Position numbers and translations under genes: made by a program. A stretch of 64,000 nt of DNA from positions 134,602,001-134,666,000 of the forward strand of contig NC_083229.1 in the NCBI RefSeq assembly GCF_032191835.1, given 5' to 3'. Below, piece after piece: positions 811-56,269 of this stretch. Within the stretch, counting starts at the first letter, position 1. Each line of letters opens with the position of its first letter. The DNA comes from Heteronotia binoei. Taxonomy: Eukaryota. The notes under the pieces are model-generated. The model saw only the letters and a program-made list of their open reading frames with translations, was not told where the DNA came from and did not search any database.

Positions 811-939
811 CTGATTTTTTAATGTATCAATACATTTTCGTAGTTTTCCTAACGTGTTTGAGCTGCTGTACTGTTCTGGTCCAAAGCTATATTGCTGGAT
901 CCAGTTACAACCTTGTGAGTAGAGAAGTTTCTCAGGGAG
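811..939 (-). CDS. OTULINL: OTULINL coding exon (OTU domain), LPEKLLYSQGCNWIQQYSFGPEQYSSSNTLGKLRKCIDTLKNQ; gene continues beyond window start
   Basis: tttcag acceptor, gtgagt donor, 129 nt, phase 0/0; matches human FAM105A LPEKLLFSQGCNWIQQYSFGPEKY rather than OTULIN. Confidence 0.95.
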
Positions 940-4405: not shown

Positions 4406-4555
4406 CTTTAGAACATCGACTGCCTTCATCCATGGTGGAAGAGGGATACCTTGGCTGAATATCTGAAACAACACAGCTCTCAACACGCAGTAGTTATCTC
4501 TTCTTACTTCGCGTATATATTTTATATGATGCCTCCAAAACAGGTCTTCATAAGC
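4406..4555 (-). CDS. OTULINL: OTULINL coding exon, AYEDLFWRHHIKYIREVRRDNYCVLRAVLFQIFSQGIPLPPWMKAVDVLK
   Basis: 150 nt, AG/GT, phase 0/0; matches human AYEELFWRHHIKCVRQVRRDNYDALRSVLFQIFSQG. Confidence 0.95.
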
Positions 4556-5908
4556 CTTTAAAAAAGGGACATATATAACAAACTAAATTTCTTGATCTTC
4601 CTAGCTGGTTGTGTCATGAGGTAAATTCAGGGCACTGATTCTGGGCACCGTTAGCAGCAAGGCAGGAGGGCAACGACAGAACCCACCCACCTGTTCAGAG
4701 TATTTACATCCCCCACACACCTTTTCTCCCGTAGACTCTCCCCGAGACAAGGCAGCTAAATGCACACAAGCTAGAAACACAGCCGACTCTACCCCAACAA
4801 TTTACTCTCCACTAAGAGTTCTTTCAAATAATACTGTCCTGCAGGCCTTTTTAAATGTAGCCAGGGAAGGAGCCTTCTATACCCATTCTGGCAGGCCACT
4901 CCACAGATACACCAGCAAGAAAGCCTGTGATGACCTCATTGTCACCATACGGACAATCCTAAGAGGGCCTCACTTGGAAAATGGAAACAGAGTCCAGCAG
5001 CACCTTTAAGACCAGCGTTTTATTCAAGGTATGAATTTTTGAATTTATGCACACTGCCTCAGATACATAGAAGCGGAAGAGTAATTGGAGAGTTAATTGG
5101 CAGAGCCTGGGAAAGAGATCCTGTGCAAGGAAATGGGTGCCGCCTCGGCAAGACCACAGTTGCCTTCTCATGCAGGTGTGATGCAGGCAAGAGAACTTGC
5201 TACTTGGCTGGGAGCCACACCACAGAAACGAGCAGCAAGAGGCCACAATTTAGCTTTTCCAGCTCAGACAACTCAAAATTTTTCAGACCAACCTGAGAAA
5301 CATTCTGTTCCTACAGAAAGGACTGGATTAATTACTATGCTTTAATCATAACAAAATTCCTGTGTGCATCAGAACAACAGGGAAGCCACCTTGACCCACC
5401 ACACTGGGAAAACCCAAACTAATAGTTGTGTTTCCACAGCTGAAGGACGGAGAACACAGCTGTGGTCTAGTAGCTTGCATGCAGACACGCACATGTTCAG
5501 ACTTACTTCCGCTTTGAGGTCAATATTTCCTTCCACACAATAGTGAACTTCCATGAAAAATGCTTTCCATCTTAAAGAGCCCAAGAAAGAAGATACTGGA
5601 TTGGATTTATATCCCACCCTATACTCTGATGAAGCCAGTGTTGCTGATGCAGGGTAGAGTTGGGAGGCAAGGGAGGAGGTGAGTATTGTGTCTTCTGGAT
5701 GGCAGAGACAATCCTTCATTTTACCTCCTACGTGACCATTCAGACTGGTGCACCCAGCAGATGTTCTACCCACTGAGCCACAGCCCATGTCCAAACCAGC
5801 AAGGCACTTGAATCCCCCAAAAGGAAACCCTCCTTTCTGATTTGGCTTGGAATAGGCCAAGCTCAGCCAACCATTCTGGTGCTTCCTTCACTCCTCAATA
5901 ACTCTTAC

Positions 5909-6000
5909 TTCTCTCATCTTCCTGTCTTGCTCTGTTTCTCCTTTCCATTTCTGTGCACAGTAACCGAGCAGGTCAACTTCAGCCAGGACAGAGTGGTTCC
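5909..6000 (-). CDS. OTULINL: OTULINL coding exon, (R)NHSVLAEVDLLGYCAQKWKGETEQDRKMRE
   Basis: 92 nt, ttag acceptor, gtaaga donor, phase 1/0; matches human RNLSVEAEVDLLSYCAREWKGET. Confidence 0.93.
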
Positions 6001-6099: not shown

Positions 6100-6131
6100 T
6101 TATGAATTTTCTCTGCAGGTATCTGCTCCAC
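6100..6131 (-). CDS. OTULINL: OTULINL 32-nt exon, (W)WSRYLQRKFI
   Basis: ttcag acceptor, gtaaaa donor, phase 2/1; matches human WWIGYLQRKFK. Confidence 0.9.
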
Positions 6132-6781: not shown

Positions 6782-6852
6782 CATTTCAACAGATGAGCTA
6801 GATACGTATACAGCTGCCTGCAGTACCAGAGAGCAGCCGTGAGAAGAGGCAT
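6782..6852 (-). CDS. OTULINL: OTULINL exon 2 coding part from first in-frame ATG, MPLLTAALWYCRQLYTYLAHLLK(W); exon acceptor at 6929
   Basis: donor TG|gtaggt in phase 2 joins the 32-nt exon; similar to human AAICYFRRLHLYSGHKLKW; the start codon choice is inferred because of in-frame TAG at 6925-6927. Confidence 0.7.
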
Positions 6853-8478
6853 GCTTGACTCAGTCAGTCTCTTTACAGCTCCGAAGGTGTGGAGGGCAGC
6901 TCCACTCCAAGACTGCAACTCATTCTATCCTAAAAGGGGGGGAGGGGAGAGAGAGAAAGTAATAAGCTTCACAGTGTTTGCAAGAGATAAAGGTCATTAT
7001 TCACATCATTCTGGACAGGATCACTTCCAGGTCTCCTCCCAGGCAGACTAGCCCATTCACACCTCCACAGAAGCACGGAGAAACAGCCCTTCCAATATGC
7101 ACAGCTGGGGGGCAGCCAGAATGTGTCTCCTAATGTGTTCGTTTGAGGATCCCTCTGCCCAGTACGCAGGGGTAGCAATTCACCAGGGAAGCTAGAAAAG
7201 AGAAGCAGACGACACATATTGAAGCTGATGGGGTTAGTGAGGACTGGTTAAAGGCGGGCTATGTTTAGCTCCAGATGGGTGAAAACAGATGCCAGGCTTG
7301 TCAAATATTATCAGATCCAGCTGTTTGCTAGCCAAGAGTACTGTATGAAAAAAGGAAGACAAAATATACCCCTTATCAAAAAAGAGACTTAAATAGCAGC
7401 TTATCAAACAGCAACTTAATCAGCTCTTGCAAAAGTCAGATACATATCCGAACAGGCCTCAAATGATGTTAAATCATTTTGCCTTTGAAGCAATATTTGC
7501 AAGGGAGATGCAAGCTGCAGGAGATGCAGACCTCGCAAAAAAGGGAAGGGCTTCAAACAAAATATACACCAAAGCCTGGACTTTGGATTCTGGCTGTTCC
7601 AAAAGAAGGAAGAGAAACAGAATCTTTGTCTGTGTTTGCATGTCACACCCAGGATTTGTGGCAGGCAGCAGAATTCACTTGTCAGCCTTCAGCTGGCGGG
7701 GAAAGCAAGGCCTACTGCAAACCTGTGGCTCAGAGCCACACCTGCCCGTGAGGCTGCGTTCCTGCTGCAAAGATGTGGCATAACCCCAACATTCAGATCT
7801 CAGTCTTTTGCTTCTGAAAATCTGAAGCCCCTTGCTGGTAGGTGTGCTGCTGGGCGCAATATAATCCTCAGGAGTGACTCTGGTGCAGGGGGTCTCCAAC
7901 GCGGTGTCCGAGAGCACCATGGTGCCCAGCAAGGGTTTTTAGAAGGGGGGGGGCACTTGGGATCTTGAGCCATCACTAGCGCTTCTGGCTGTTCCCTAGA
8001 GATCTGATTGGCTGTGCAGATTGCAATAATGTTGTTTCAGCAGCAGCTGCTACCAGCATTGGTTTTATTCTCTCTCACTCCTCTTCCTCAATATTCTAAT
8101 GACTACCCTTCTCCCCTGCACTTGGGCTTCCCCAGGGTGGTTGGCTCCGCCTCCTGCAACAGCTGTTTTGTGATTGGCTCTGGTGGCAGCCATCCTGTGG
8201 CTTCACCCACCACCCAACGTTGGAATTCCAAAGCTGTTCAGAGGCACAAAAAAGCTGGGGACCCCCCTGCTACAAAGCATTTCAGGCGGCTGGATCCAAG
8301 TGTCTGTTTCTTCTCTTGTACCAACATTACCATGGGATCCTTTGAAGCTACCTTGACGGCTGTGCACAAAGCAGAACTGAGGATGAAGTTAAAACTTGCT
8401 CCGATTCATTTGGCCACTCCCCAGGGCTACAAACTCACACAAACACCTGCAGCTGCCTGATACTGAGCCCAACCACTA

Positions 8479-9299: not shown

Positions 9300-10460
9300 G
9301 GACGGAATGGATGGGAGGGGGCGGTCTTGTTTCTCAGGCACTGACCTCTCATGCTGAACTCCTGGGGGCGCCTCCAGCGGGTTCTCTCGGGAAGGCTGAC
9401 GGGGCGACTGAAAGAGCGGCTTCCTGCCTAGCCGGAGGAGAGGCCCCTCCTGGGGTTGGGCCTTTTGGCAAGAAGCGGGAGACGCTGCTTCCCTGGAAGA
9501 GCCTGCTGCTGCTGCTGCTGCTGCTGCTCTGCCGCTTTGGGGCTGGAAAGGCTGGCAGGAGCAGGGGGGGGGGCGCAGTCCTTCTAGCGGCTCGGCAGCC
9601 CCACTGAGCAGCGCGCGAGGCCTCGGGGGTCCCCAGCTCCTCCTCTGAGCCGCCGCCGCCGCAGAGCCGAAGGCGCAGCCCCCTCCACGCCCAGAGCCCG
9701 GCTGCCCCGCTCTTGCTCGAAAGCAGCCGCGGCTTCTGCCCCCCGCCCAGCCCGGCCGGAGCCTCACCTGCCCGCCACGCCACGAGGAGGAGGAGGACGC
9801 AGCCTCCAGCCGCAGCAGCGCCCGCCCCGCCCCGCCCCAATGGCCGGCGCTGCGGGGAGAGGCGGAGCCGGGCGGAGGAGCGCCGCTGGGGGAACCTCCC
9901 GGTGCAAAGCTCAGGCTCTCGGGGGCGGGCGCGCCGACTCTCCTCTGGGGGAACCTGCTGCTCCACTTGCAGCTGCTGGCCCGGCCTTGGGGCAGCCCGA
10001 GCTCCCTCGCAGGGATTCTGCCCTCCTCCTCCTTCCTTCTCCCCGCGGAGCCCCGAACAAGGCGCTTTGCACGAGCCCCTCACAGCTGCTCTGGCCGGGA
10101 GGCCTCCTCCCGCTCGCCCGCTCCACGAAGCCCCGAGATCAGCCGGCGGCCTTCTCCCCCCCCCCCCCCGCAGGGCCTCCAGCGCGGGCTGCACCAGCCA
10201 GAAAGAGCACTTTCCCCACGCACGTGTCCCCGGGATGGCCAACCGCGCGCCAAATCCTCCCCCTGCTGCTGCTGCTGCTGCTCTTGCGGCCTGGAGGGAG
10301 CATCGCTGCTGATCTGCCTAGGAAGAGCCCCCTCCCCTTCGGGCAGGATCCGAGGCCTGCAGGCTCCTCTGACACAGGAGCTACATTTCCCAGGACCTCT
10401 CCTGTCCCTTTTTGAGGGCATCTGGGAAGGGGCCTTGAGAGCCGAGCCTTGCTCGGTCTT
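9300..10460 (-). promoter_or_regulatory. CpG island promoter of OTULINL with tandem GC boxes (GGGGCGGGGCGGGGCGGG, about 9821-9838) and CCAAT box (9837-9841)
   Basis: sharp rise in GC and CpG density relative to CpG-depleted flanks; motifs seen directly. Confidence 0.8.
9768..9822 (-). other. OTULINL: Probable OTULINL exon 1, apparently non-coding
   Basis: strong donor gcag|gtgagg at 9768 inside CpG island, directly downstream of CCAAT and GC boxes; no ATG between the boxes and the donor; TSS position inferred. Confidence 0.55.
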
Positions 10461-13099: not shown

Positions 13100-13299
13100 A
13101 TTACCTTGGCTTTGTGTGGGCTTTTTGCTCCAAATTTTGATGGGCTGGTAATGGCCCTGGAGAGGGTTATATGCATCTGGCTCCCAGGGTTATAGCCAGA
13201 TCTGGCACAAAGAGTCATACCTGCTGTAATGTGTCTATCCAGAAACCTCTGAATCTCAGCAAGAGGTCTGATTATTGAGGATTCCTCTGGAGCTGGTGA

Positions 13300-13730
13300 G
13301 GGGTTCGGAGACCAAGTCCTATGAGGAAAGGTTGAAGAAGCTGGGCATGTTTCGCCTGGAGAAGAGGCGGCTGAGAGATGATAGGATCACCATCTTCAAG
13401 TACTTGAAGAGCATATAGAGGATAGTGTGGAATTGTTTTCTATAGCCCCAGAAGGTAGGACCAGAACCAATGGGTTGAAATTACTCAAAAGAATTTCCGG
13501 CTCAACATTAGGAAGAACTTCCTGACCGTTAGAGCGATTCCTCAGTGGAACAGGCTTCCTCGGGAGGTGGTGGGCTCTCCCTTCTTGGAGGTTTTTAAAC
13601 AGAGGCTGGATGGCCATCTGACAGCAATGAAGATCCTGTGAATTTAGGGGGAGGTGTTTGTGAGTTCCTGCATTGTGCAGGGGGTTGGACTAGATGACCC
13701 TGGAGGTCCCTTCCAACTCCATGATTCTAT
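13300..13730 (+). mobile_element. CR1 LINE 3' fragment
   Basis: [19 protein letters not shown]-type C-terminus and tail gaggtcccttccaactccatgattctatga. Confidence 0.85.
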
Positions 13731-16531: not shown

Positions 16532-17232
16532 TTTGGTCTTTAATTTGCCACAAGGCAAACCAAGTGCTAGGGAATTGAATATTGGCTGTGAGGCTTTTGT
16601 GAACTTTTTTGCAGATAAGGTCTTGTTGCTCTGCTGTGACCTCTCTGCCACATTTGATACAGTGAGCAAACTTGAGGCACCAAGAACATCTTCTGGTCTA
16701 GTTTTGGATTGCTTCACTCCACTCAGCCTAGAAGAAGTTGACAGTGTTCTGTCCTCTGTGTGCCCTGCTACCTGTGTGTTGGCTCCATGCCTGTCCTGGC
16801 TGATAAAGGCTTGCTGGTTGAAGCTACAAAATCCTCTCCAGGTGATTGTCAACAGATCCCTTTTGAAGAGATCTTTCCCACACCTCTCAAAGAGGCAGTG
16901 GTTCAACCCCTCTTAAAAAAACTATCCTAAGACCTGGCCATATTAGCGAACTATCAGCAGGGGTTGAACTTACCCTTTTTGGGCAAGATTATAGAGCGGG
17001 CTGTGGCAGCACAGTTGCAGGGTTTTCTGGATGACTTTTCTGTGCTGGATCCATTTCAGTCTGGCTTTTGCCTGGGTCATGGGATGGAGATGGCCCTAGT
17101 TGCCCTCATAGATGACCTCCAGAGGCAGCTCGGCAGTGCTGTTGTTAGATCTATTGGCTGCATTCGATACAATCAACTATCAGCTACTAGCCAGCCACCT
17201 AGCTGATGAGGGGATTCAGAGGTCCAGCTTGC

Positions 17233-27027: not shown

Positions 27028-27573
27028 TTAAACTTTTGGCAAGAGTCTGCTCTGTAAGAAGTTTTTAATGCTACAAATGGGTCGAACATCATTCTGGTGT
27101 TTCCGCCGCTCAATGAAGGAAGTCAGTCTGGCTATGTCAATCTGGCTGTCAGCACTTTTGGCACTGCCTGGCTGCAGCCACTGGTCCTGGAGGGCTCGTG
27201 CAGCAGAAGGACGCTGGGCTGGGTCAGCCTGCAGCAGGAAACAGACAAAATCTTTGGCCTTCTGGCTCACTCCTTTGAAGTAGTCATCTGGGAAGCTAAA
27301 ATCTAAGCGGCAAATGTTCAGGCAGGTTTCCTCTACACTTTCGTCCAGGAAAGGAGACACGCCACTCAGGAGGACATATGTGAGCACTCCAATGCTCCAC
27401 ACATCTGAGGTCAGGGAGACGGGGTTTCCAAGGATAATCTCAGGAGCTGCAAACTCTGGGTTCCCAAGTAACTGGTGGATATAGTAGGTGGTATTGAGCT
27501 GGACTGCATCTCCAAAGTCAGCCAGCCGGATGGTTGCTTTGGCCAAGCTTTTATCCACCAGAACGTTTTCAGG
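27028..27573 (-). CDS. TRIO: TRIO terminal coding exon (kinase C-lobe), PENVLVDKSLAKATIRLADFGDAVQLN..LQSRLLPKV*
   Basis: ttttag acceptor, DFG motif, APE motif, TAA stop; near-identical to human TRIO C-terminus. Confidence 0.97.
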   Translation of the reverse strand, partial: PENVLVDKSLAKATIRLADFGDAVQLNTTYYIHQLLGNPEFAAPEIILGNPVSLTSDVWSIGVLTYVLLSGVSPFLDESVEETCLNICRLDFSFPDDYFKGVSQKAKDFVCFLLQADPAQRPSAARALQDQWLQPGSAKSADSQIDIARLTSFIERRKHQNDVRPICSIKNFLQSRLLPKV

Positions 27574-33835: not shown

Positions 33836-34860
33836 TCAACCAGAAGAAACAGCTTGCAGCACCGCAGCTCCCAGATGAGTCCTCTGTTCAGCATGTACGT
33901 CCAGCGCATAGTGCTTCATAAAGGCATGCGGAGAGGACCAGGTGACAGCCTTGCAAACGTCCGTCAGGGAAACACCTTTCAGGAACGCCACAGACTTCGC
34001 CATCGCTCTTGTAGAGTGTCAGCGAATAGGCCCAGGTAACGGCTTCTTAGCCAACAAATAACACAGTTTAATACTCTCAGTAAGCCATTTTGAAAGCCGC
34101 TGAGACGAGATTCTGGAACCTAACTTAGGAGCAGCATAAGAAACAAAAAGATGCTGGTCCTTATGAAAACCCTTGGAGCAACTCAAATAAAATAATAAGG
34201 CATGCTTAACATCTAAAGCATGCAACCTACGTTCCTCATCCAAGGAAGGTGTAGGATAAAACGTGGGCAACCAAACTTCTAAGTTAAGGTGGAACTGAGA
34301 AACCACCTTGGGGAGAAAGGAAATATCAGGAACTAAGGACACTCCAGACTCCTGAAAAGCTAAATATGGGTAGTCACAACGCACAGCCGTGAGCTCCCCT
34401 GCACGGCATGCTGATGTGATGGCTACCAAAAAGGCAGTCTTCCAAAATAGGAGCTGTAACGAGCATGTAGCCATCGGCTCAAAAGGACGCCGAGTCAGCC
34501 TGTCCAACACTAGAGTCAAATCCCACAACTGTGGGGGTGATCTCGAAAAAGAATGAAGCAAACCCTTAAAAATCTCTTAGAATGAGGGTGTGCAAAAACT
34601 GAATGCCCCTCCACTGGTTCATGGAATGCAGATATTGCCGTCAGATTAATGGAGGAAAAAACAAGGCCAGCATCCACCAGAGACAACAAAAACTCAAAAA
34701 TAACTGGCAGCCCCACCCTCTGGGGCAAAACGGTAGGATCAACTAAAAACTGAAGAAACTTCCACCACTTCCTATTATAAGAAGCGTAGGTAGACAGCTT
34801 CCTGATATTCAGGAAAACGTGTTGGACTCTGCTGGAGAACTCACAGTGTCGATGAACCAT
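33836..34860 (-). pseudogene. DIRS tyrosine recombinase, disrupted
   Basis: STYASYNRKWWKF N-domain, WDLTLVL, AITSACRAGEL, ALDVKHALLFYL, then TGA at 34019-34021 followed by HSTRAMA..FMKHYALDV; frameshift near 34560. Confidence 0.9.
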
Positions 34861-34964
34861 GCTGTCAGCTTCAGGTGGGGCATGTTGTGATGGAATACAT
34901 GACCGTCCTGAGCTGACAGAAGATCCGGTTCCACCGGAAACTGGTAGAAGACCCCCCTCGCCAG

Positions 34965-35740
34965 TTAGAGCAAGATCGGGAACCAGTTCTGCTGAGGCCA
35001 CCACGGAGTCACAAGGATGCAGCATGGTTTCTCTCTTGTGATCTTGTTGACCACCCTTGTCAATAGTGGCAGAGGTGGGAACAGATATAGGAATCGACCT
35101 TCCCACGGGAACAGCAGAACGTCTCCCAACGACTCTGGATCCGAGCCCCCTCTGGAGCAGAACAGAGGACATTTCCGGTTCTCGACTGTGGCAAAGACGT
35201 CCACCTGAGAATACCCCCAGAGCTGAAACATGGGTTGAAGGAAGCACCACTGTATCTCCCACTTGTGTGGGGAAGCCGCACCCCTGCTGAGGGAGTCTGC
35301 TTGCAGATTGAGCACCTCTGGGAGATGCGCAGCCTTCACAAAGATGTTGCGGTCCAGGCACTCCAACCACAGTTCCACTGCCAGCGCACAGAGCTGTCGA
35401 GAAACTGTCCCTCCCTGTCTGTTGATGTAACACAGGGCAGTGGTATTCTCCGTAAGCAGAGCAACAACCTTCCCCGCCACCATGGGGCGGAAGGATCAAA
35501 GAGCAAAATGAACTGCCAGCAGTTCCAGATAATTTATATGGCAATGAGTCAATTTCAAAGGCCAAGGGCCCCCCACACACAGCACGTCCATGTGGGCCCC
35601 CCAACCCCATAAAGACGCATCTGTTGTGATCGTCACTGTTGGTACAGGCAGGTGGAAGGGAGCTCCCTGACAAATGTTGTCCTTTGATTTCCACCACTGC
35701 AGTGTTTGATGTGTCACAGGTGGAATTACAAACCTCTTTC
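34965..35740 (-). pseudogene. DIRS RNase H plus Dam-like methyltransferase domain, frameshifted
   Basis: TTDASLWGWGAH, HINYLELLAV, ENTTALCYINRQGGT, NLQADSLSR, VDVFAT, LYLFPPLPLL, LVTPWWPQQNWF. Confidence 0.9.
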
Positions 35741-36620: not shown

Positions 36621-39600
36621 TAATATACAAGGGAATTTGAGGGTTGGGGCCTATTGGGTTAATCTGAATATTGGGATCTGGTAGGGCGGAGTGGACTGGG
36701 GAATATTGGTGACAGTAGTGCATTGGTGGTGGCTAAGATTGCTGTTGCCACCAGCGGGGAATGGCTGGTCTAGGGATTCCAGTGCTCCTGGGGAGGGGGA
36801 GGTATGGCGGTGGGAACAGATGACATAAGGGAGGAGGACTGAGACAAGATAGTGCTCGGTCTTCCTCCAATCTGTGTCCCATCCCAAGGGTGACAGGTAG
36901 TAGGGTCAGGCTGAATAACTCGCCTCCGTCATTGGTGTTATGCAATTCCAAGTCCATTAATAATAAGACCTCTGTCCTTTGACAGTTCCTACTCAAACAG
37001 GACATGGACCTGGCTTGCGTGACTGAAACCTGGGTGCGAGAGGGAGATACAGTAGCCCTCTCGCAAATAGCTCCCCCGGGCTATTCAGTCTTCCACCAAT
37101 CGCGGACTAGTGGGCGGGGAGGAGGAGTGGCATTATTTATACGAGAGACTTACTCCTTTAGGGTGCTCCCGGCCCCAAAGATTGAGGGTATTGAATGTGC
37201 CGGTCTGGCGTGGGAGGTTGGAGAGGGGTTGGCGATCTGGCTGGTGTACCATACGCCAAATGCACCAGCAGGCGCTTTACCGTCCCTGCTCGAGGCGGCG
37301 ACAGGCTGGGCGTTGGAGCACCGAAGGTTGGTGATCCTGGATGACTTCAACGTCCATGCTGATGACCCGACCTCCAGTCAGGCGATGGACCTAGTGTCTT
37401 CCATGGCGATGCTAGGACTCTCTCAATTGGTTACAACCCCCACTCACCAGGCCGGGCACATGTTAGACCTGATCTTTGAGGCCGGGGTTACGGTGGACGA
37501 TATAACCGCTGAAGCGGTGCCATGGTTGGACCACCTCGCCCTCAGGGCTCGTGTAGATATGCCACCCCAAACCTGTTTAGGCGACGAGCTCATTATGGCT
37601 TGCCCGCGGAACCAGATGGACCCGGAACGGTTCCAAATGGCTCTGCAGGATCCCTGGCCCTCTGGCGATTCTCTCAATGGCCTGGTGGAGACCTGGAATA
37701 GCCGGCTCTCTAGGGCCATTGATGAGATCGCACCTTGACGCCCTCTACGACCTCAGACTAGGCTGGCTCCGTGGTATACCCCGGAGCTACGCCAGCTGAA
37801 ACAAGGCCTTAGACGGCTAGAGAGGCAATGGCGGCGTACCCGTGACGAAGCAACTAGAACATCTAATAGGAAGTTTATGAGGTCCTATGAGATGGCAGTC
37901 AAGGCCGCAAAGAAAACATACTTTGTGGCTAAGATTGCGTCTGCAAACTCGCGCCCGGCACAATTGTTTAGGATAATTCGGAATTTTACTACATTGCCAC
38001 AAGGCAATCCAAACATTAAGGAATTGGAGATTGGCTGTGAGGCCTTTGCGAAATTTTTTGCAGACAAGATCCAGTCGCTCCGCCACGACTGCCCTGCCAA
38101 TTTGGAAGCAGTAAGCGAACTCGAGGCCCAATGCGTGTCTTCTGGTTTGATCCTGGATTGCTTTGACCCACTCAGCCTGGAGGAAGTTTACAGAGTCCTT
38201 GTCTCCGCATGCCCAACAACTTGTGATCTGGACCCATGCCCCTCCTGGCTAATTAAGGCTTGCCAGGAGGAGCTAAGATGTCCTATATGGGACATCATAA
38301 ATAGATCTCTTTCAGAGGGCTTTTTTCCAACACCTCTGAAGGAGGAAGTGGTCTGCCCTCTCCTGAAAAAGGCTACATCAGATCCGGCGAAAATGGCTCA
38401 TTATCGGCCGGTCTCAAATTGCCCTTTTTGGGCAAAATTATAGAGAGGGCTGTGGCGTTGCAGTTACAGGCATTTCTGGATGACGCTTCCACCTTAGATC
38501 CGTGCCAGTCCAGCTTCCGCCCGGGCCATGGGACGGAGACGGTTTTGGTCGCCCTCATGGATGACCTCCGGTGACATCTGGACCGAGGTGGTTCGGCAGT
38601 ATTGCTGCTGTTAGACCTATCGGCTGCTGACCCGCTGCATCGCCGACGCAGGAATTCGGGGGCTATCCTTACAGTGGCTCTCCTCCTTCCTTGAAGGTCG
38701 GGGACAAAGGGTGGCAATTGGAGGAGAGCTGTCCCAGAGACACCTACTTAATTGTGGGGTGCCTCAGGGGGCGGTTCTCTCCCCAATGTTGTTTAACATC
38801 TACATGCGCCCCCTTGCCCAGATTGCCCGGAGGTATGGGCTGGGTTGCCACCAGTATGCTGATGACACCCAGCTCTATCTATTGATGGACGACCGGACTG
38901 ACGATGTCCCTATAAATTTGGACTGGGCGTTGCAAGCCGTGGCGGGTTGGCTCAGGCTGAGTGGGCTAAAGCTGAATCCAGCAAAGACAGAGGTCCTTTG
39001 CGTGGGTCGCGGCGGGCCAGGAGGGGAGGTCTCCCTACCGACTTTTGACGGTGCGTCACTGATACCAGTGCGCAGGGTCAGGAGCTTGGGAGTGCTACTG
39101 GAGCCTTCCTTGACAATGGAGGCCCAGATAGCTGCCACTGCCAAATCCGCCTTCTTCCACCTTAGGAGGGCGAGGCAGTTGGCCCCCTTCCTGGAACGCG
39201 GCAACCTGGCAACTGTGATCCACGCAACGGTCACCTCGAGGTTGGACTACTGCAATGCCCTCTACATGGGGCTGCCCTTGTACCGAACGCAGAAACTACA
39301 GCTAGTGCAGAATGCAGCGGCCAGGCTGTTAGTGGGACTACCATGGTGGGAACACATACAGCCTGGGCTGCGCGAGTTGCACTGGCTGCCAATTGTGTAC
39401 CGAGTTCGTTACAAGGTGCTGGTTATTACCTTTAAAGCCCTATATGGCCGAGGACCTGCCTACCTTAGGGACCGCCTCTCTCCATATGTTCCCCATAGAG
39501 CACTGAGATCCAGCTCCCAAAACCTACTACGAATCCCTGGACCAAGGGAGGCCAGACTGAAGGTAACAAGGGAGCAGGCCTTCTCCACAATGGCTCCCCA

Positions 39601-39951
39601 ATGGTGGAATCAACTACTAGAGGAGGTGCGAGCCCTGCGAGACCTAAATCAGTTTCACAGGGCTTGCAAAACCACCCTCTGTCAACTCGCGTTTAAGATG
39701 GAACCCGGAAATGACACCTAGCCATCTTATACATATACTGAACTGTGGCACTTTAATTTGTAGCTGTTAACAATTTTAATTGTTTATTTAATTTAATTGA
39801 ATGTATTTAACTATTTTAATTGTCTTTTATTGTAATGATTGGATTTTAGTGTAATCATGGTGTAAACCATGTCATGTGAGCCGCCCTGAGCCCACTTTGG
39901 CGGGGGAGGGCGGGATATAAGAATAAATTTATTATTATTATTATTATTATT
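36621..39951 (+). mobile_element. L2 LINE with full-length but disrupted ORF2 (ATG 36761 to stop 39721) and (ATT)n tail; its 5' UTR may extend to about 35745
   Basis: APE motifs VTETW, DDFNVH, HMLDL; RT motifs VPQGAVLSP, YADDTQLY; several stops are CGA>TGA type; tail gagccgccctgagcc..gggagggcgggatataag. Confidence 0.95.
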
Positions 39952-40173: not shown

Positions 40174-41091
40174 TCATTGGTACGGCGGGTATGGATAGGC
40201 ATAGGGAGGCCACTGGTGCTGCTCCCACGGTGGAAGGGGTGGGAAGCGGCGAGCTACGGTGGTCGATTCCAGCTCTCTCCGACCTCTTGCCTGATCCAGT
40301 GGTGCCAATGGCTCCATCGGTGCTGACACCTCCACCTCCGAGACAGAGTCGCTCTCACTGCGACGCCTCAAACCCGAAGAATGGGAGCGCTGAGTGAGGT
40401 TGATCTCTTGGTCTGATGCTGATAGACGCAAGTGCTGCGAAGCACTGCCTCTCGACACTGAAGGGCTACGATGTGGGGGCGCCAAGATCTTCCTCGGCGG
40501 AGCGGTCGACATCGATGTCGAAGCGTCATGAGAAGGTGAAGGAGTGCGGGACGATCTCTTCTTCCGCTTCTCCTTAGATTTCACCTTCGGTGCGGATGAT
40601 CGGGTCCCCGAGTCATTCCGACGCTTCTTAGCTGGGGTGTCCACTGACCCTTCAGAAGGTCGCTTTGTGGAACGCCCGCGCTTGACTGGCATCTCGGTCC
40701 TGATTGGTGATGTATCAGCCGATGTGACCGTCGGGGCTGCGGCCTCTCCCATCGGTACCGACGGGCCCGATGCCATTTTTCGAGGACGAAGTGCCGACTC
40801 TACCAACGCAGCTGAAAGCATCGCTGCTCGATTCTTGCAACTTTGCTTGGAAAAACTCAGGCAGTGCGAGCAAGAATCCACACGATGTCCCTCACCCAAA
40901 CACAGAAGACAGAAGGAATGGCCATCGGGGGGGGGGGGGGGGAATCTTCTTCCCACAGGAGCGGCACCTCTTAAAAACCCCCAACATCTTTCCACAGACG
41001 CCAAGGAAAAAACCCACCCAGGAAAGTCTCTGAGGGGAAAAACTGGGCCCCAAAGGGCAAGTCCAACAAATTTATTTTTTTTAAACAACAC
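40174..41091 (-). CDS. DIRS gag-like ORF with N-terminal Cys/His zinc-binding motif; true start probably near 41010
   Basis: DGHSFCLLCLGEGHRVDSCSHC, then basic/Ser-rich region typical of vertebrate DIRS ORF1. Confidence 0.8.
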   Translation of the reverse strand: MLFKKNKFVGLALWGPVFPLRDFPGWVFSLASVERCWGFLRGAAPVGRRFPPPPPDGHSFCLLCLGEGHRVDSCSHCLSFSKQSCKNRAAMLSAALVESALRPRKMASGPSVPMGEAAAPTVTSADTSPIRTEMPVKRGRSTKRPSEGSVDTPAKKRRNDSGTRSSAPKVKSKEKRKKRSSRTPSPSHDASTSMSTAPPRKILAPPHRSPSVSRGSASQHLRLSASDQEINLTQRSHSSGLRRRSESDSVSEVEVSAPMEPLAPLDQARGRRELESTTVARRFPPLPPWEQHQWPPYAYPYPPYQ

Positions 41092-47980: not shown

Positions 47981-49051
47981 ATCAGTTCTAAATGTAACAT
48001 GTCGAATATAAATGTGTGGGAAAAGGTGGGTTTTGAGGAGAAACTTTTATTTTCTACTGCAATAAATTTTAAATAATATTTTAAAAAGACAGTTCTCCAT
48101 ATATCCTGTGTTCATATACACGTGAAAGTCTTTACATACAGAAAGCTGGTATGCTTGGGAGACAGGCAGGGAATGCTTTGATGTGAGAGAAAGCTTTCAG
48201 TCCTGCAAGGGCTTTTACCCCTTCTGTGAGGGGGGGAGGGGCACGGGAACTTTCTGAAGGGCTGAATGCTAACCCCTTCCATTCTAGCAGAAAGTGCAGC
48301 ACGAGTGGTGGAGCCTGGGCAACTGGTTGATATCAAAGTGTTTGGAAGAACACAGATGAGAAAATGCCAACCGACACATTCACCTGCCAAGCTAACGGGA
48401 TAATGGCTCTCCTGTGATTGTGTTGCTCTAGAAAGACGCTGTGCCCATCCATCTCTGCTGCCTGCCTATGCTAGAAAATCTTTTAAAGGTTTGGTACAAA
48501 TAGGATTCTTGACCATTTTTGACACTAATTCCCACGGCCCCCTTTAAGTAAGAACGGCCTCTGTGCAAACACACTTTTGTCCTCCCTGAAATGTCACATG
48601 ATGGGTGCCATCAATCTCGTAATAATGCTAAATTAGGTCTTCTTTCACTGTGGCTTTGTGTCTCTGCACCACCTGTGACCAAAACTCAGGCCAGATGTTG
48701 CTCTTCACCTTTGCAGCACCTGCTTTTACCAGCCAGCCAGCTAAACTGCTCCAGCTTCCTCTCCTGGCTACCAGTTTTCCAAGTCACACACTCAGCTGCT
48801 TATTATAATTGGATGACTTGCCTTAAAATTAATTTAGGGATAAGAGTGGGCTGGGACTTATAGGAACATTGTTTCTGAAATGTTTCATCCCCCGCAATTT
48901 CTCCCCCGCCCCAAACCAGGTTTTGCCGAGACCCTTCAAAGCGAACACGGGAGGATGCCGCTCAGCACATGCAGTCGCCCTTCATGCAGAGCTGCTCCAG
49001 GTACGAGAGATTAAACTTCCTTGATCTTTCTCAAATCATTATGACAATAAT

Positions 49052-50862
49052 CTTGGATCACTTCGACGCGCTCAGTCTTGGGGAAGTCGACGAAGTCCTC
49101 TCAACTGTACGCCCTACAACTTGCGACCTTGACCCATGCCCCTCCTGGCTAATTAAATCTTGCCAGAGGGAGCTTAGATATCCTATACGGGATATCATAA
49201 ATAGATCCCTCTTGGAAGGGCAATTCCCAACATCTTTGAAAGAGGCCATGGTCCGCCCTCTCCTAAAAAAGAGTACAGCAGATCCGGCCGAATTGGCAAA
49301 TTATCGACCGGTCTCGAACCTACCATTTTTAGGTAAGGTTATAGAGAGGGCAGTGGCGTCACAGTTGCAGGGTTTTTTGGATGACACTTCCGCCTTAGAC
49401 CCTCACCAGTCCGGCTTCCGTCCGGGCTATGGGACGGAGACAGTGCTGGTCGCCTTGGTGGATGACCTCCAGCGGCATCTGGATCGAGGCGGCGTGGCGG
49501 TGCTGATATTGTTGGACCTGTCGGCCGCATTTGATACGGTCGATCATCAGCTACTGGCCCGCCGGCTCGCCGACGCGGGGATTGGGGGATTGGCCTTACA
49601 GTGGCTTTCCTCCTTCCTCGAAGGACGGGGACAAAGGGTGGCCATTGGGGGGGAGCGGTCCCGGAGGCACCCACTAGTATGTGGGGTGCCACAAGGGGCA
49701 GTTCTCTCCCCGATGTTGTTTAACATTTATATGCGCCCCCTTGCCCAGACTGCCCGGAGGTTTGGGCTTGGGTGCCACCAATACGCTGATGACACCCAGC
49801 TCTATCTACTAATGGATGGCCGGCCTGGCTCCGTCCCAGAAAGCCTGGACTTAGCACTGCAAGCCGTGGCAGGTTGGCTCAGACTGAGCGGGCTGAAGTT
49901 AAATCCAACGAAGACAGAGGTCCTTTGCTTGGGTCGCGGTGCCCTGGGAAGGGAAATCCCTTTGCCGGTCCTTGACGGTGTGCAGCTTAAAGCGGCACAT
50001 AAGGTCAAGAGCCTGGGGGTTCTTCTGGAGCCTTCATTATCAATGGAGGCACAGATAGCGGCCGCTGCCAAGTCCGCGTTTTTTCATCTTCGACGGGCAA
50101 AGCAGTTGGCCCCCTTCCTGGAGCGCCGTGACCTAGCAATGGTGATCCATGCTACGGTCACCTCGAGACTGGACTACTGCAACGCCCTCTACATGGGGCT
50201 GCCCTTGTGTCGAACTCGGCGGCTGCAGCTGGTGCAGAACGCGGCGGCTAGGCTGTTGCTGGGGCTCCCAAAGTGGGAGCACATACAGCCGGGGCTGCGC
50301 GGGCTGCACTGGCTGCCAGTGGTATACCGAGTTCGCTACAAGGTGCTGGTTATCACCTTTAAAGCCCTATATGGCCGAGGACCTACCTACCTGAGGGACC
50401 GTCTCTCCCCATATGAGCCCCAGAGGGCACTGAGGTCATCTGGGAAAAACCAGTTGAATATCCCTGGGCCAAGGGAGGCCAGACTGAAGGCCACCCGGGA
50501 TCGGGCCTTCTCGGTCGTCGCTCCATTATTGTGGAACCAACTCCCCGAGGAGATGAGGGCCCTAAGATGTTTAGATCAATTTCGTAGGGCCTGTAAGACC
50601 CACCTTTTCAAGGTGGCCTTCAACTAGCGATAGAATCAGCAATAAAGCTAGGTATGCTGCTGGAAATGTTTTTATTATCTGATGTTACGAAATCTAATGT
50701 TTACAACGCCATATTGTTATGTTAATTTTAATAATTTATAACTGTTTTAACCATGTTTTTATAATGTAAACTGATGTAATGTGTATTTTATGCTGTGAGC
50801 CGCCCTGAGCTTGCTTCGGCGGGGAGGGCGGGATAGAAATAAAAAATTATTATTATTATTAT
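49052..50862 (+). mobile_element. Young 5'-truncated L2 with uninterrupted RT-to-C-terminus frame (to 50627) and (ATT)n tail
   Basis: QSGFRPGYGTET, DLSAAFDTVDH, GVPQGAVLSP, YADDTQLY with no stops; CpG-rich. Confidence 0.95.
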
Positions 50863-51499: not shown

Positions 51500-54090
51500 C
51501 TGTGGATTAACAAATTCAGTGTAAGGGGAGAAAAAAGGGAAAAATTTAGACAGATACAAAGCAAGCATCTATGTTCCACAACATCAGTATGACTGAGATA
51601 TATCCATCTCAATAAACCTAAGTTTAGGCTAACTTTCACCAAAGATAGAAACTTGGTTTGCATGAAGCTAGTAATCGAAGAGAAAAGAGTTTCCTGCTAT
51701 CTGGTAAACGGAGCCTTTATATATGATCGCCAACATAAGAGGACAACAGAGCAGGCATTCTAAATGCAATTGTGATTTCTGTGTCTGTATACTAATTGCT
51801 TGGTTTCCTTCCTGAAGAAGCATTACAGGAAAGCTGACGTGTTGGGCTGGAAGAACCAAAGATTAGCATTGACAAACTCTGCTTCCATTTTAAAAGATGC
51901 CTGCCTGCAAATTATTAAGTCCTCTTCAAGTTCTGCCGTTACTGGGTCTGTCCAGATAAGACCCCTGGCTTAAGGCAGAGGTGGGGAAAAATGCTGGTCT
52001 TGCTAACTCAAGAGGAGAAAAGTGGAACCGAAGTCCACAACCATTAAGCCACCCCACTGCCCCCACATTCCAGCTTCTCCTCCCCGAGACATCCTCTGCT
52101 TAGCCTGCCAACCCATTTCGGCTACACGAATGGATGAGAAACACTGGAGTCCGAAACAGATATAGGCTGAAAGCTACAAATTTGCTCATTTAAGTTGCAA
52201 TCAAAGTTTGTGGAGAATTTACAACAAAATTGTTCCATGCAACTGTCTTGGAGACAGGATGTGGCCACCCCCTTACTCTCCCCCTCAATACCTGGGGAAA
52301 AAATTCAACAAAGAAGCAATATTTTGCTAATTTTGACATTCTTCTCACCACTGGCATAATTCCCATTGCAAACATTAAGTTCTGAGTTGCCAAGTAGAGT
52401 TTCCAACTCCAGGACATGGAGAAAAGGAAACTGTTGGAATGCGCAGATGTCTAAAGACACTCCCTTCCCAAACAATTGCGAATTTGAGACACTTCAATCT
52501 TTTGAACAAACTTTGAGTCCAATGGAAACTTAAAGACCAACAATGTATAATTCTGGGTGTAAGCTTTTGTGTGCACGCAACGAACTGATGCTTAGTATAA
52601 GCTTTCACGTGTGCATGTGTACGGAAGCTTCTACCCAGAATGAAACTTGGTGGGTCTTAAAGGTGCTGCTGGACTCAAACTTTGTTCTGCTCCTTCAGAC
52701 CAACATGGCTGCCCAGCTGCATCTATATCATCTAATGCTTCACCCATCTTTGATGCTTTAGCAGGAAAGACATGACACTTGGCTCCCATTGTGCCAGAGA
52801 TTAACACTAACAAAACATAATGTTTTCTTTAAGAGGCCCTTTTTCTTAATGGCAACTGAAAGCCTGCTTATCCTAGCAGCCAAGCTAACTTTTCTCTAAG
52901 CGAAGGAAACCATTTAAGGAGGAAAGCCCAAGCCAAATCAAATACAAATCATGGAAGTTCAAACAGGAACAGGCATGCAAAGCAGAACTCTGACTCTAAA
53001 ACTATGAACAAGAAGTATAAAAAGAGGAAGTCTCGAGAGTGCTACATGGTTAAAAAATCCAAAGAGTGCATGCTTCCAAGAAAGGTTCTGAAGGCCGTGA
53101 CCTGCAATTTGTGTTGTGCTGAAGCTATCAAGGGAGGTAAAGAGGACACGGACACCTGAATGAGGGGAGGGGAGGAGGAGATACCAACCCCAGAGCTAGA
53201 ATGTGCCCATCACACTCCCAGTCCCACCCAGTGCTCCTTCTCAGGGGCCTGCAGGTGTCCTGTGAATGCCGTGTGGTCTATCCAGGCAGGCTGTGGGCTG
53301 GCTGGTCTCCTCTGAGCACTGGAGACAGCAAAGCATCTCAGGTCTTCTAGCTTTGGGGCAACTGTCGCAGCCTTTTAGCTGTGTCTTGCTTACCAGCACT
53401 CTGATGCTAGAAGGTTCCAGGACTAGGTATGCATATTAAAGACAACAGATCAGCAAAATGCTGTGGTGCAACTAGGTTACAAAAAGCAGAGACGGGAGCT
53501 TGGAGGGGTAGCTGGCTAGCTGAATGTGAGCCCTGGAGAGGCAGCTGCCCTCTGAATGCCAGTTGCTGGTGCCAACAGAGAGGGAGGGAGGGCTGCCAAA
53601 TTCAGGCCCAGCTTGTGAACTTTCCAGAGGGTCCCCGTTGGAACAAGGATGCTGGTCTGACTCAGCAGGGCCATCGTTATGTGTGTGCTTGCATGTCGAT
53701 GCCAAAGGAGTAAGTTCTGAACTGTTCTGCAGGGGAAATACATAATAAGCTGAGATCTGCTACGGTGGCCGTCCACAGCATGTTAAAATGTCTGCCTTCA
53801 TGTTAGATGGGAGAAAAGCCAAGAGCAAGTTAGTAGAAGTCAGACTAGCATGGTTTTTTAAAAATAATTCAGCAGAGGCAGGAATCACATTTAGAGAGGG
53901 TTAGAAGGCTTTCCTGTGTGTCTACACCCACACACAGACCCTGAGGCTGGAGCAGTTGATTATTATTTCAGAGCAGTGATGCAGCACCGGAGAGTCAGAA
54001 GTTAGTATGCAGAGTGATGGCCGCGCAGAGGAGGGGCAGCACGGGAAGGTGTTTAGAGAGCCGGCAGGACAGAAGCGCTCCGTCTCTTAC

Positions 54091-54836
54091 CCCGTTGCTC
54101 TGGGTGGAGTGTACTGACTGTTCGCTGGTCGAGGAACATGTGCTCATGCGGTCTGTGTCCTTGCTGTGCGAAGAGAGGCGGTGCACCTGGCGCTGGAGGG
54201 AGTCGCTGTCCCCAGGAAACGTGAAGGAGCCGGGGCGGCTGGCGGGGGATGCCGGGATCGAGCTCCAAAAGGAGCCCTTCTGCAGGGGGCTGCTGGGGGG
54301 GAAGACTTCCTTGCCAAAAGGAGAAGGGAAAGCAGTCGCCGGAGAGTTTATTGGCGAGACGGCTCCAGGCCTGGATTTCCCCAGGGTCAAGGATCCAAGG
54401 CTGCTCCTCGAATGGGTCTCCTCAGAATTGCCACGGAGCTCCCTTTGATCTGCATCTGCTGAGCCCAGAGCTCCTCTCCGTGTCTTCTGGGGGCTCTCTG
54501 CTGCTTTCGTCTTTGCCATCTTCTCTGCTTCTCTCTCGGGGCCATTCTGCTGTGCATTTGCTGGGTGTCTGCCTATCTGGCTAAGGCCAGCCTCTAGGGT
54601 GGTGATGTGGGGAGGCAGCAGGGAGGAACTGGGAGCGGACGTACCTGACATCTTGTCTGCCTCTGCCTGGGCGGAGGCTGCAGAGGAGACCAGGACTGGG
54701 GAATGGTGCCGGACGGGCTGTGGGATCCGGGAAGGCCTGCTGCGGCTGGAGCTGGGGATGCCAGGGCAGCTGCTGCTGTTGCCGCTTCCACCAGGGCCAC
54801 TGTGGTTCCTCTGGTACTCAATGGGTGACGTCAAGG
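54091..54836 (-). CDS. TRIO: TRIO large Ser/Pro-rich exon, (A)LTSPIEYQRNHSG..STCSSTSEQSVHSTQSNG
   Basis: 746 nt, ccccag acceptor, gtaaga donor, phase 1/0. Confidence 0.96.
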
Positions 54837-56269
54837 CTGGGGCAGCAATGGGCAAAGATGGAGAGCAATTAGAATAGACAGTGCAGAGCAATTTGATGCT
54901 GGTTTTCAAACAACAACCACTCCAAAAAGTCATTCACTCCTCTTCAGAGAAGGGAACAAAACCCAGAAGCTAATCCTCATGTACCACATCAGAATTTTTT
55001 TTTTTTTTTTAAATTGTCATCTAAAATTCTTGATTCCGCCCAACCCCCCCTCTAGTGACATTTTAGCTACTGCTGTGACAGGTGAATAAACACATTTAGC
55101 TGCAGGGGGACAGATGCAGTCCAACCAGTGTTGTTCAATATTACTTGCTTGGAATGGAATGAAATTTCTCTTCTCAATATTGGTATAGAGAGAGTTTTAT
55201 TTCAAAAAGTGTTAACAAAGAATAAAATGTTTATTGAATTAACTGAACACAAAATGATTAACGGGACATAAAAAGTCTGAATTAACCGAACAGAAAATGT
55301 TGACTGAATTAACTGAACACAAGCAATTCTTTGTCACTAAAAAGGTATATCAATTGCTGAAGCATCATAAAAATCAGGAAATACTGAAAGAGAAGCAGTA
55401 CCTTTAAAAATGGAGGGAAACAACAGACCAAGAAATGACAATATAAACATGTGGAAATTGCGTTTGTGTGTGTGGGCTGATCCAGTGGTACCCTGGTGCC
55501 ATAATGGAAGGGGGTCCCTCCAATGGAAACTTCCCACTTAGTAGAAGAGAACTGTTGTTTCCTCCATGCTGTTATTTATGGTATACAGCAATGCAGCATT
55601 TTCACAAAATTGATCAAAGACACAGCTCAGTTTTGAAAGATACGATGTTCTCTCCATTCACACACACTGGGAACAGTTAGGGAGTTAGTCCCATGTGCAT
55701 AATGCCTTTGGGTTATGTCTTTTAAAAAGTGGTGTCTAAAGGACTAGTTATTCAAACCTTTAAAGCAAGCTAATAGTAAATATATCACCATTTTAATTAT
55801 AACACACTTTAAAAGCAACACAATACCACTTACAAAAGAAATACTATCCCAACTGTGTGGCACATGGCTATTTCTCTTGAGCAGTTTGGCATGAACAGAT
55901 AAAGGTACTGGAAAACTGGCTCCTTCCATCATTATGTTAAAGAAAGTCAACATGAATTAATCAAAGGTGATTTGTGATGGCTGCTTATCCAAATGCAGTT
56001 ATCTGAACACTGGGGCTCTAATTCTCATGCTGAAGAATGCCAATAATTTGTGTGGATTGAAAGATGAAATTCTTAAATGGCTGCCTGTTTACTTCAAAGT
56101 AGGATATCTGTAAATTTTAAACTAAATAAGACATGGAACATTATTCAGTAATCCACATCTCAAAAACAGGAAGGACAGGATAGGCTGTAAAAAGAGGAGT
56201 CTGGATGCTGCATTCCTAATTATACACGAGGCAGAATCAAGGCCCCCTTCAAACACAGCTCAGGTTTAC

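Follow-up and report, generated by a model that had tools for sequence, protein, structure and literature searches.

The OTULINL orthologue of Bynoe's gecko (Heteronotia binoei) is an intact, transcribed and previously annotated gene, and its fourth coding exon, an ordinary part of that gene, encodes a cysteine (Cys88) at the position of the OTULIN nucleophile. Human OTULINL is the textbook pseudo-deubiquitinase of the OTU family. We consider that the best overall explanation, with a probability of about 0.6, is an OTULINL that has kept its ancestral cysteine and that most likely acts in a scaffold-like manner. The DNA analysed, hereafter the window, is a stretch of 64,000 nt without runs of N.

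An intact OTULINL gene in Bynoe's gecko

Five coding exons of OTULINL were located in the window (Table 1). When joined, they encode 158 residues that match XP_060098998.1 over its residues 1-158 with 100% identity. This protein of 307 aa is listed together with XP_060098999.1 in RefSeq as 'inactive ubiquitin thioesterase OTULINL [Heteronotia binoei]', and its residues 159-307 are encoded by two more exons outside the window. The surrounding locus, L001, was retrieved from GCA_032191835.1 (record CM063331.1), and window position 1 corresponds to position 16852 of this locus. The full identity of the protein and the overlap with the locus indicate that the window is gecko genome and that the gene was already annotated.

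Table 1. Features located in the window, in window coordinates
Feature	Position	Strand	Remarks
OTULINL first coding exon	6782..6929	minus	ATG at 6852 (MPLLTAALWYCRQLYTYLAHLLKW); in-frame TAG just past the acceptor
OTULINL second coding exon	6100..6131	minus	32 nt (WSRYLQRKFI); needed for the 100% match to XP_060098998.1 residues 25-35
OTULINL third coding exon	5909..6000	minus	ends ...NHSVLAEVDLLGYCAQKWKGETEQDRKMRE; carries the equivalents of OTULIN Tyr91, Trp96 and TQK100-102
OTULINL fourth coding exon (focal exon)	4406..4555	minus	residues 66-115 of the 307-aa protein
TGC codon, Cys88	4487..4489	minus	aligned with OTULIN Cys129 and human OTULINL Asp139 (HMMER, MAFFT)
OTULINL fifth coding exon	811..939	minus	residues 116-158 (LPEKLLYSQGCNWIQQYSFGPE...); last OTULINL exon within the window
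CAMK-type kinase C-lobe exon	27031-27558	minus	best PDB matches DAPK1 (1.6e-33) and twitchin; upstream of OTULINL
Long Ser-rich ORF	53995-54933	minus	upstream of OTULINL, same strand
Retroelement ORF	13275-13418	plus
Retroelement ORF	34019-35697	minus
Retroelement ORF	37004-39721	plus
Retroelement ORF	40174-41091	minus
Retroelement ORF	48969-50627	plus

The focal exon is bounded by an AG acceptor at 4557-4556, preceded by a pyrimidine-rich tract, and by a GT donor at 4405-4404 (GTGGGT, 4405-4400). Read from 4555 to 4406, it holds one open frame of 50 residues that includes FWRHHIK and RRDNYCVLRAV, while both other frames contain stops. These residues form the N-terminal portion of the OTU/Peptidase_C101 domain, including the Cys-loop RRDNYCVLRA. 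In a phmmer search of all PDB chains, the exon matched human FAM105A (6drm_A) along all 50 residues with an E-value of 1.1e-20 and 75 bits, whereas human OTULIN was matched at about 39 bits and over residues 12-46 only; the match to FAM105A lies far beyond chance. In this alignment, the cysteine of the exon stands opposite the aspartate of RRDNYDALRS in 6drm_A. The Pfam family PF16218 (Peptidase_C101) matched the focal exon at 2.3e-15 and also matched the fifth coding exon, and NCBIfam returned zero matches, as expected of a prokaryote-oriented library.

At the level of the full protein, the best PDB match was again 6drm_A (E 1e-121), with the OTULIN chains at about 5e-63; the PDB alignments span residues 36-304, and the PF16218 family profile is annotated on XP_060098998.1. 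Because the solved orthologue is matched at E 1e-121, an OTULIN-type OTU fold of gecko OTULINL is not in doubt. We then placed the protein in a maximum-likelihood tree of 98 OTULINL and 20 OTULIN sequences, from which a Ser-bearing Pelodiscus isoform was left out. OTULIN and OTULINL were split with 100% SH-aLRT support, and the gecko sequence fell within Gekkota (99) inside the squamate OTULINL clade (100). Moreover, squamates have a separate true OTULIN, for which a dozen squamate entries were found. A mis-assigned OTULIN exon is thus ruled out by the bit scores, by the tree placement and by the squamates' own OTULIN. The earlier note, made from the letters of the window alone, had read a TGC codon at 4487-4489 within RRDNYCVLRAV and had assigned the gene to OTULINL rather than OTULIN; both readings hold, the first with an exon on the minus strand that has intact splice sites and a single open frame, the second with the exon scores, the protein scores and the tree.

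Squamate OTULINL proteins are shorter (306-320 aa) than those of turtles, birds and mammals (365-371 aa), and the gecko N-terminus is about 60 aa shorter. The gecko protein begins MPLLTAALWYCRQLY, with an in-frame stop ahead of the start. As a result of this shorter N-terminus, the hydrophobic membrane-localisation segment is encoded only in part, namely its C-terminal half. Human OTULINL carries an N-terminal hydrophobic membrane-localisation motif, PMLM (PMC7862380). We propose that gecko OTULINL would be membrane-associated, as its mammalian orthologue is, despite the N-terminus about 60 residues shorter in squamates. The promoter and 5' exon of OTULINL probably correspond to a CpG island of high GC content that spans roughly 9300-10400.

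In its orthologue group, OTULINL sits between TRIO and OTULIN, on the strand of TRIO. The kinase exon and the Ser-rich ORF of Table 1 are probably 3' exons of TRIO. The OTULIN gene lies outside the window and outside the retrieved locus. The interval between the putative TRIO and OTULINL is populated by retroelement ORFs, comprising LINE reverse-transcriptase ORFs (336 and 552 aa), an endonuclease-like ORF, a DIRS/tyrosine-recombinase-like pair, a Ser/Pro-rich gag-like ORF and a CR1-type C-terminal fragment. The length of some of these ORFs suggests that they were active recently.

The catalytic triad and the likelihood of enzymatic activity

Residues were mapped by HMMER alignment to the OTULIN chains, where 77 is added to the chain index to obtain human numbering, and by MAFFT alignment with a 352-aa rabbit OTULIN, whose functional residues are numbered as in the human protein. 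The last OTULINL exon (24035-24217 of L001) ends GAA GAT GAC TGG CAT TAC CAC ATC CCT, which reads EDDWHYHIPVAQM, and then a stop. In its DDWHYH motif, His299 (CAT) aligned with OTULIN His339 and His301 (CAC) aligned with Asn341. The state of the gecko triad is therefore Cys88/His299/His301, compared with Asp139/His350/His352 in human OTULINL and Cys129/His339/Asn341 in OTULIN (PMC7862380). The same source agrees with the earlier note on human Asp opposite OTULIN Cys129. The note had further placed the His/Asn part of the triad in downstream exons beyond the window, and there the His339 equivalent is indeed present, as His299, but the position of Asn341 is taken by His301. The latter position varies among geckos, being H, D or L.

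A full HMMER search queried with the exon and a word search queried with a bird orthologue together yielded more than 150 OTULINL proteins of named species, and the three positions were compared between groups (Table 2). Cysteine was found at the nucleophile position in 20 of the 21 squamates and the His339 equivalent in all 21. The sole squamate that departs from cysteine is Tiliqua, with serine, and serine also occurs in one Pelodiscus isoform.

Table 2. Residues at the three catalytic positions of OTULIN and OTULINL
Group	Nucleophile position	His339 position	Asn341 position
OTULIN, 20 of 20 sampled	C	H	N
OTULINL of lungfish, coelacanth, salamander, three frogs and Anolis (full triad)	C	H	N
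OTULINL of caecilians and other frogs	C (Gly in Ascaphus)	H, Q or Y	variable
OTULINL of turtles, gharial and most squamates, including all seven snakes	C	H	H
OTULINL of tuatara	C	L	H
OTULINL of all 25 birds	C in 11, S in 14	Y	H (D in Galbula)
OTULINL of mammals	D; N in platypus and Jaculus; A, S or T in a few	H (Q in muroid rodents and Tamandua)	mostly H

Gecko OTULINL would most likely be an OTU-fold scaffold or binding protein, as is supposed for mammalian OTULINL, rather than an OTULIN-like Met1-ubiquitin hydrolase, and the Cys88-His299 pair would represent a conserved core feature rather than a proven catalytic dyad. The protein is thus predicted to work like its mammalian orthologue, and probably not as a robust deubiquitinase. 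The chief alternative is that gecko OTULINL, and non-mammalian OTULINL in general, would be an active cysteine hydrolase, either a deubiquitinase or a ubiquitin esterase, possibly at the ER membrane, with Cys88 as the nucleophile and His299 as the base, and that thiol catalysis would have been lost secondarily in mammals. We regard this as a tentative reading that has a real but minor share of the probability.

The alternative draws on the retention of both Cys and His across the deep divergence of nearly all squamates, as well as in turtles and the gharial, and on the full Cys/His/Asn triad of lungfish, coelacanth, salamander, several frogs and Anolis. Gecko OTULINL also has an OTULIN-like DNYC Cys-loop and EDDxHY His-loop, retains equivalents of Y91 and W96 and has Asp at the D336 equivalent, which is Asn in mammals. 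In many cysteine proteases, catalysis relies on a Cys-His dyad or on a non-canonical third residue. On the other hand, the third triad residue in this gecko is His, neither Asn nor Asp, and it varies among geckos at a position that is essential in OTULIN: the N341A mutation abolishes OTULIN activity, while L259E, E314R, W96A and TQK-to-AAA reduce it (PMC3690481).

The positions that contact ubiquitin at the S1 site in OTULIN also vary freely in squamates, which weighs against the active-hydrolase reading. At the L259 position, squamate OTULINL shows L, H, S, Q, R or D, with Asp in every snake and Leu in this gecko, and at the E314 position D, T, V or H, with Asp in this gecko. This variation indicates that the distal-ubiquitin contacts in squamates are without OTULIN-type constraint. 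The equivalents of OTULIN Tyr91, Trp96 and TQK100-102 in the gecko are Y48, W53 and T57-E58-Q59, so that the TQK motif reads TEQ. The PIM residues D54 and Y56 fall in gaps in all OTULINL sequences of the alignment, and the gecko C-terminus, IPVAQM, is without the PDZ-binding tail. All seven snake OTULINLs combine Asp at the L259 position with Phe at the Y91 position and still keep Cys and His. In OTULIN, L259E weakens ubiquitin binding and Y91F lowers kcat 20-fold.

Overall similarity to OTULIN likewise failed to set the gecko apart from mammals. Of the 112 positions at which all sampled OTULINs, teleost through mammalian, are invariant, the gecko retains 76 (0.68) against a mean of 0.678 for mammalian OTULINL; greater OTULIN-likeness of the gecko at these sites was therefore not found, and at such constrained positions it has diverged from OTULIN as far as the mammalian proteins have. 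Nor was Cys88 unusually conserved, since about one third of the OTU-domain columns were at least as conserved among non-avian non-mammals.

Birds provide a further view of the relation between the two residues. By the mapping in Table 2, they lost the general base (His to Tyr) on their stem lineage, independently of the nucleophile loss in mammals. In birds, a change from Cys to Ser took place on at least five or six occasions, as relaxed constraint after the breaking of the dyad would allow, and this is in line with an active hydrolase elsewhere. The replacement in birds is always Ser and is seen in passerines, tinamous, Centropus, Thinocorus, Turnix and Dryobates. However, the coupling of Cys and His losses on the tree was not significant in independent pairs (p ~0.5, with only 7 pairs). 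Moreover, Cys is kept where His is lost, as in tuatara (Leu), Rhinophrynus (Gln), Pyxicephalus (Tyr) and half of the birds, indicating that the cysteine can be conserved without a dyad.

Weak activities have been reported for human OTULINL even though it has no Cys at this position, namely diubiquitin cleavage on a protein array (PMC7344921) and Ub-Ser esterase activity (bioRxiv 10.64898/2026.10.20.760496), and these residual activities count in favour of an active hydrolase. Taking both sides into account, we consider robust Cys-dependent deubiquitinase or hydrolase activity of gecko OTULINL, perhaps on non-canonical ester-linked substrates, to be less likely than not. A wider proposal is that OTULINL would be a pseudo-enzyme only in mammals and that the non-mammalian protein, ancestral as well as present-day, would be an active Cys-dependent ubiquitin (iso)peptidase or esterase that prefers other substrates than OTULIN does. 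It would include both the Cys/His/Asn proteins of Table 2 and the Cys/His/His proteins of geckos, other squamates, turtles and crocodilians, and we give it a similar, minor share of the probability. A scaffold-like OTULINL with an ancestral cysteine is the reading that we favour.

The cysteine is ancestral

The distribution of residues on the tree indicates that the cysteine is plesiomorphic and that its loss is a mammalian event. As mapped, the alignment and the tree show that Cys88 was inherited from the OTULIN/OTULINL duplication and has since been kept, with the change to Asp (Asn in platypus) on the mammalian branch only. The earlier note had left open whether the cysteine was kept or regained, and the first of these stands, since the residue is ancestral and present in most non-mammals, while the second fails on its distribution over the tree. 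Regain in the gecko lineage, by reversal from a non-Cys ancestor, is formally possible only, at a cost of two nucleotide changes from Asp or Asn and one from Ser. Against it, mammals apart, Cys is carried by each of the squamate outgroups, namely tuatara, turtles, gharial, basal birds, amphibians, coelacanth and lungfish, as well as by all OTULINs. In addition, the gene tree agrees with the species tree, and Tiliqua, the only non-Cys squamate, has a sister sequence with Cys. This residue distribution effectively refutes a regain, to which we assign next to no probability.

The suggestion that the pseudo-enzyme residue change could be lineage-specific is supported, the nucleophile loss being confined to mammals by both alignment and tree. 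By the same vertebrate-wide mapping of Cys versus Asp, Cys occurs in most non-mammalian orthologues, an outcome that the note had said would reduce the novelty. Accordingly, the cysteine is not special to the gecko lineage, and any sauropsid or amphibian genome is expected to show the same. The restriction of nucleophile loss to mammals and the complete triad in OTULINL of basal sarcopterygians and amphibians may be unreported; full-text searches found no paper on either, with Ceccarelli et al. 2019 outside the searched texts.

The TGC codon in RNA and in a second sample

A 1188-nt RNA contig from a run with the same species label (X5) spans positions 4406-4555 exactly, with 0 differences. Its flanks read into the start of the 939..811 exon on one side and into the 3' end of the 5909 exon on the other, indicating that it derives from a spliced mRNA with the junctions of the gene model. 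Raw RNA reads of two further runs (X11 and X12) were sparse and without differences. A second sample under the same species label, from a separate and earlier study of 2015 (X1), gave a DNA contig that covers 4473-4760 and shows no difference across 4473-4555, the TGC codon included. In the intron, this contig has four substitutions relative to the window, namely 4649 (C>T), 4654 (G>A), 4696 (C>T) and 4717 (A>G), and 7 nt are inserted after 4671, which amounts to about 1.5-2% divergence between individuals or lineages of the Heteronotia binoei species complex. The agreement of the RNA contig and the second sample indicates that the TGC codon is real and transcribed, so that confirmation of the codon in reads, as proposed in the note, was obtained. 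Cys was also present in the four other gecko genera sampled.

An artefact, whether an assembly or sequencing error at TGC, a rare allele or a mis-assigned OTULIN exon, is the least probable explanation of all: the RefSeq protein does come from the same assembly as the window, hence its identity is not independent support, but the RNA contig is from another study and has no exon difference, the 2015 contig differs in the intron and not in the exon, the other gecko genera share the Cys, and the exon scores (75 bits for FAM105A against 39 for OTULIN) agree with the tree placement.

Significance for the annotation of OTULINL

The window itself is of little consequence, as it holds a normal exon of an annotated gene. 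What matters more is the name 'inactive ubiquitin thioesterase', which has been transferred to non-mammalian OTULINL by orthology and is unsupported by the residues. Should non-mammalian OTULINL be active, the 'inactive' label on hundreds of sauropsid and amphibian proteins would be wrong. The Cys-bearing orthologues are natural reagents for the ancestral activity of the family and for when and how it was lost, because weak residual activity has been reported even in human OTULINL and the nucleophile loss is confined to mammals.

Comparison with known systems

The closest known relative is human OTULINL/FAM105A (6DRM), an orthologue that matches over gecko residues 36-304 at the E-value given above and belongs to the same tree clade. 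FAM105A was reportedly defined as a pseudo-DUB by Ceccarelli et al. 2019. What marks the human protein as a pseudo-deubiquitinase is the replaced nucleophile (Asp139), along with a lack of ubiquitin binding and of diubiquitin cleavage, and the gecko protein departs from it in the first of these. The two genes agree in exon structure and in lying downstream of a kinase-ending gene, which in the gecko is probably TRIO. Their proteins share the His350 equivalent, the His at the third position (His352), Asp in place of E314, an altered TQK motif and the lack of the OTULIN PIM. They differ in that the gecko has Cys88 for Asp139 and Asp for Asn at the D336 position of OTULIN, and in that about 60 residues are missing from its N-terminus, which leaves the hydrophobic segment incomplete.

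With OTULIN/FAM105B (Peptidase C101, PF16218), gecko OTULINL shares the residues at Cys129, His339, Y91, W96 and D336 and the motifs DNYC and EDDxHY. Unlike OTULIN, it has His for Asn341, TEQ for TQK and Asp for E314, and 36 of the 112 invariant residues are changed. OTULIN is a Met1-specific deubiquitinase, whereas the gecko paralogue is without the PIM (D54/Y56) and without the C-terminal PDZ-binding tail.

The OTULINLs of lungfish, coelacanth, salamander, some frogs and Anolis belong to the same orthologue group and share Cys and His with the gecko, but carry Asn where the gecko has His. With the full Cys/His/Asn triad, they are better candidates for an active OTULINL than that of the gecko. 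USP53/USP54 and OTUD6B were, as is said, first classed as inactive and later found to be active. Together with the esterase activity of human OTULINL, they are precedents for a wrong 'inactive' label, with the difference that biochemical assays decided those cases whereas the present one is argued from sequence.
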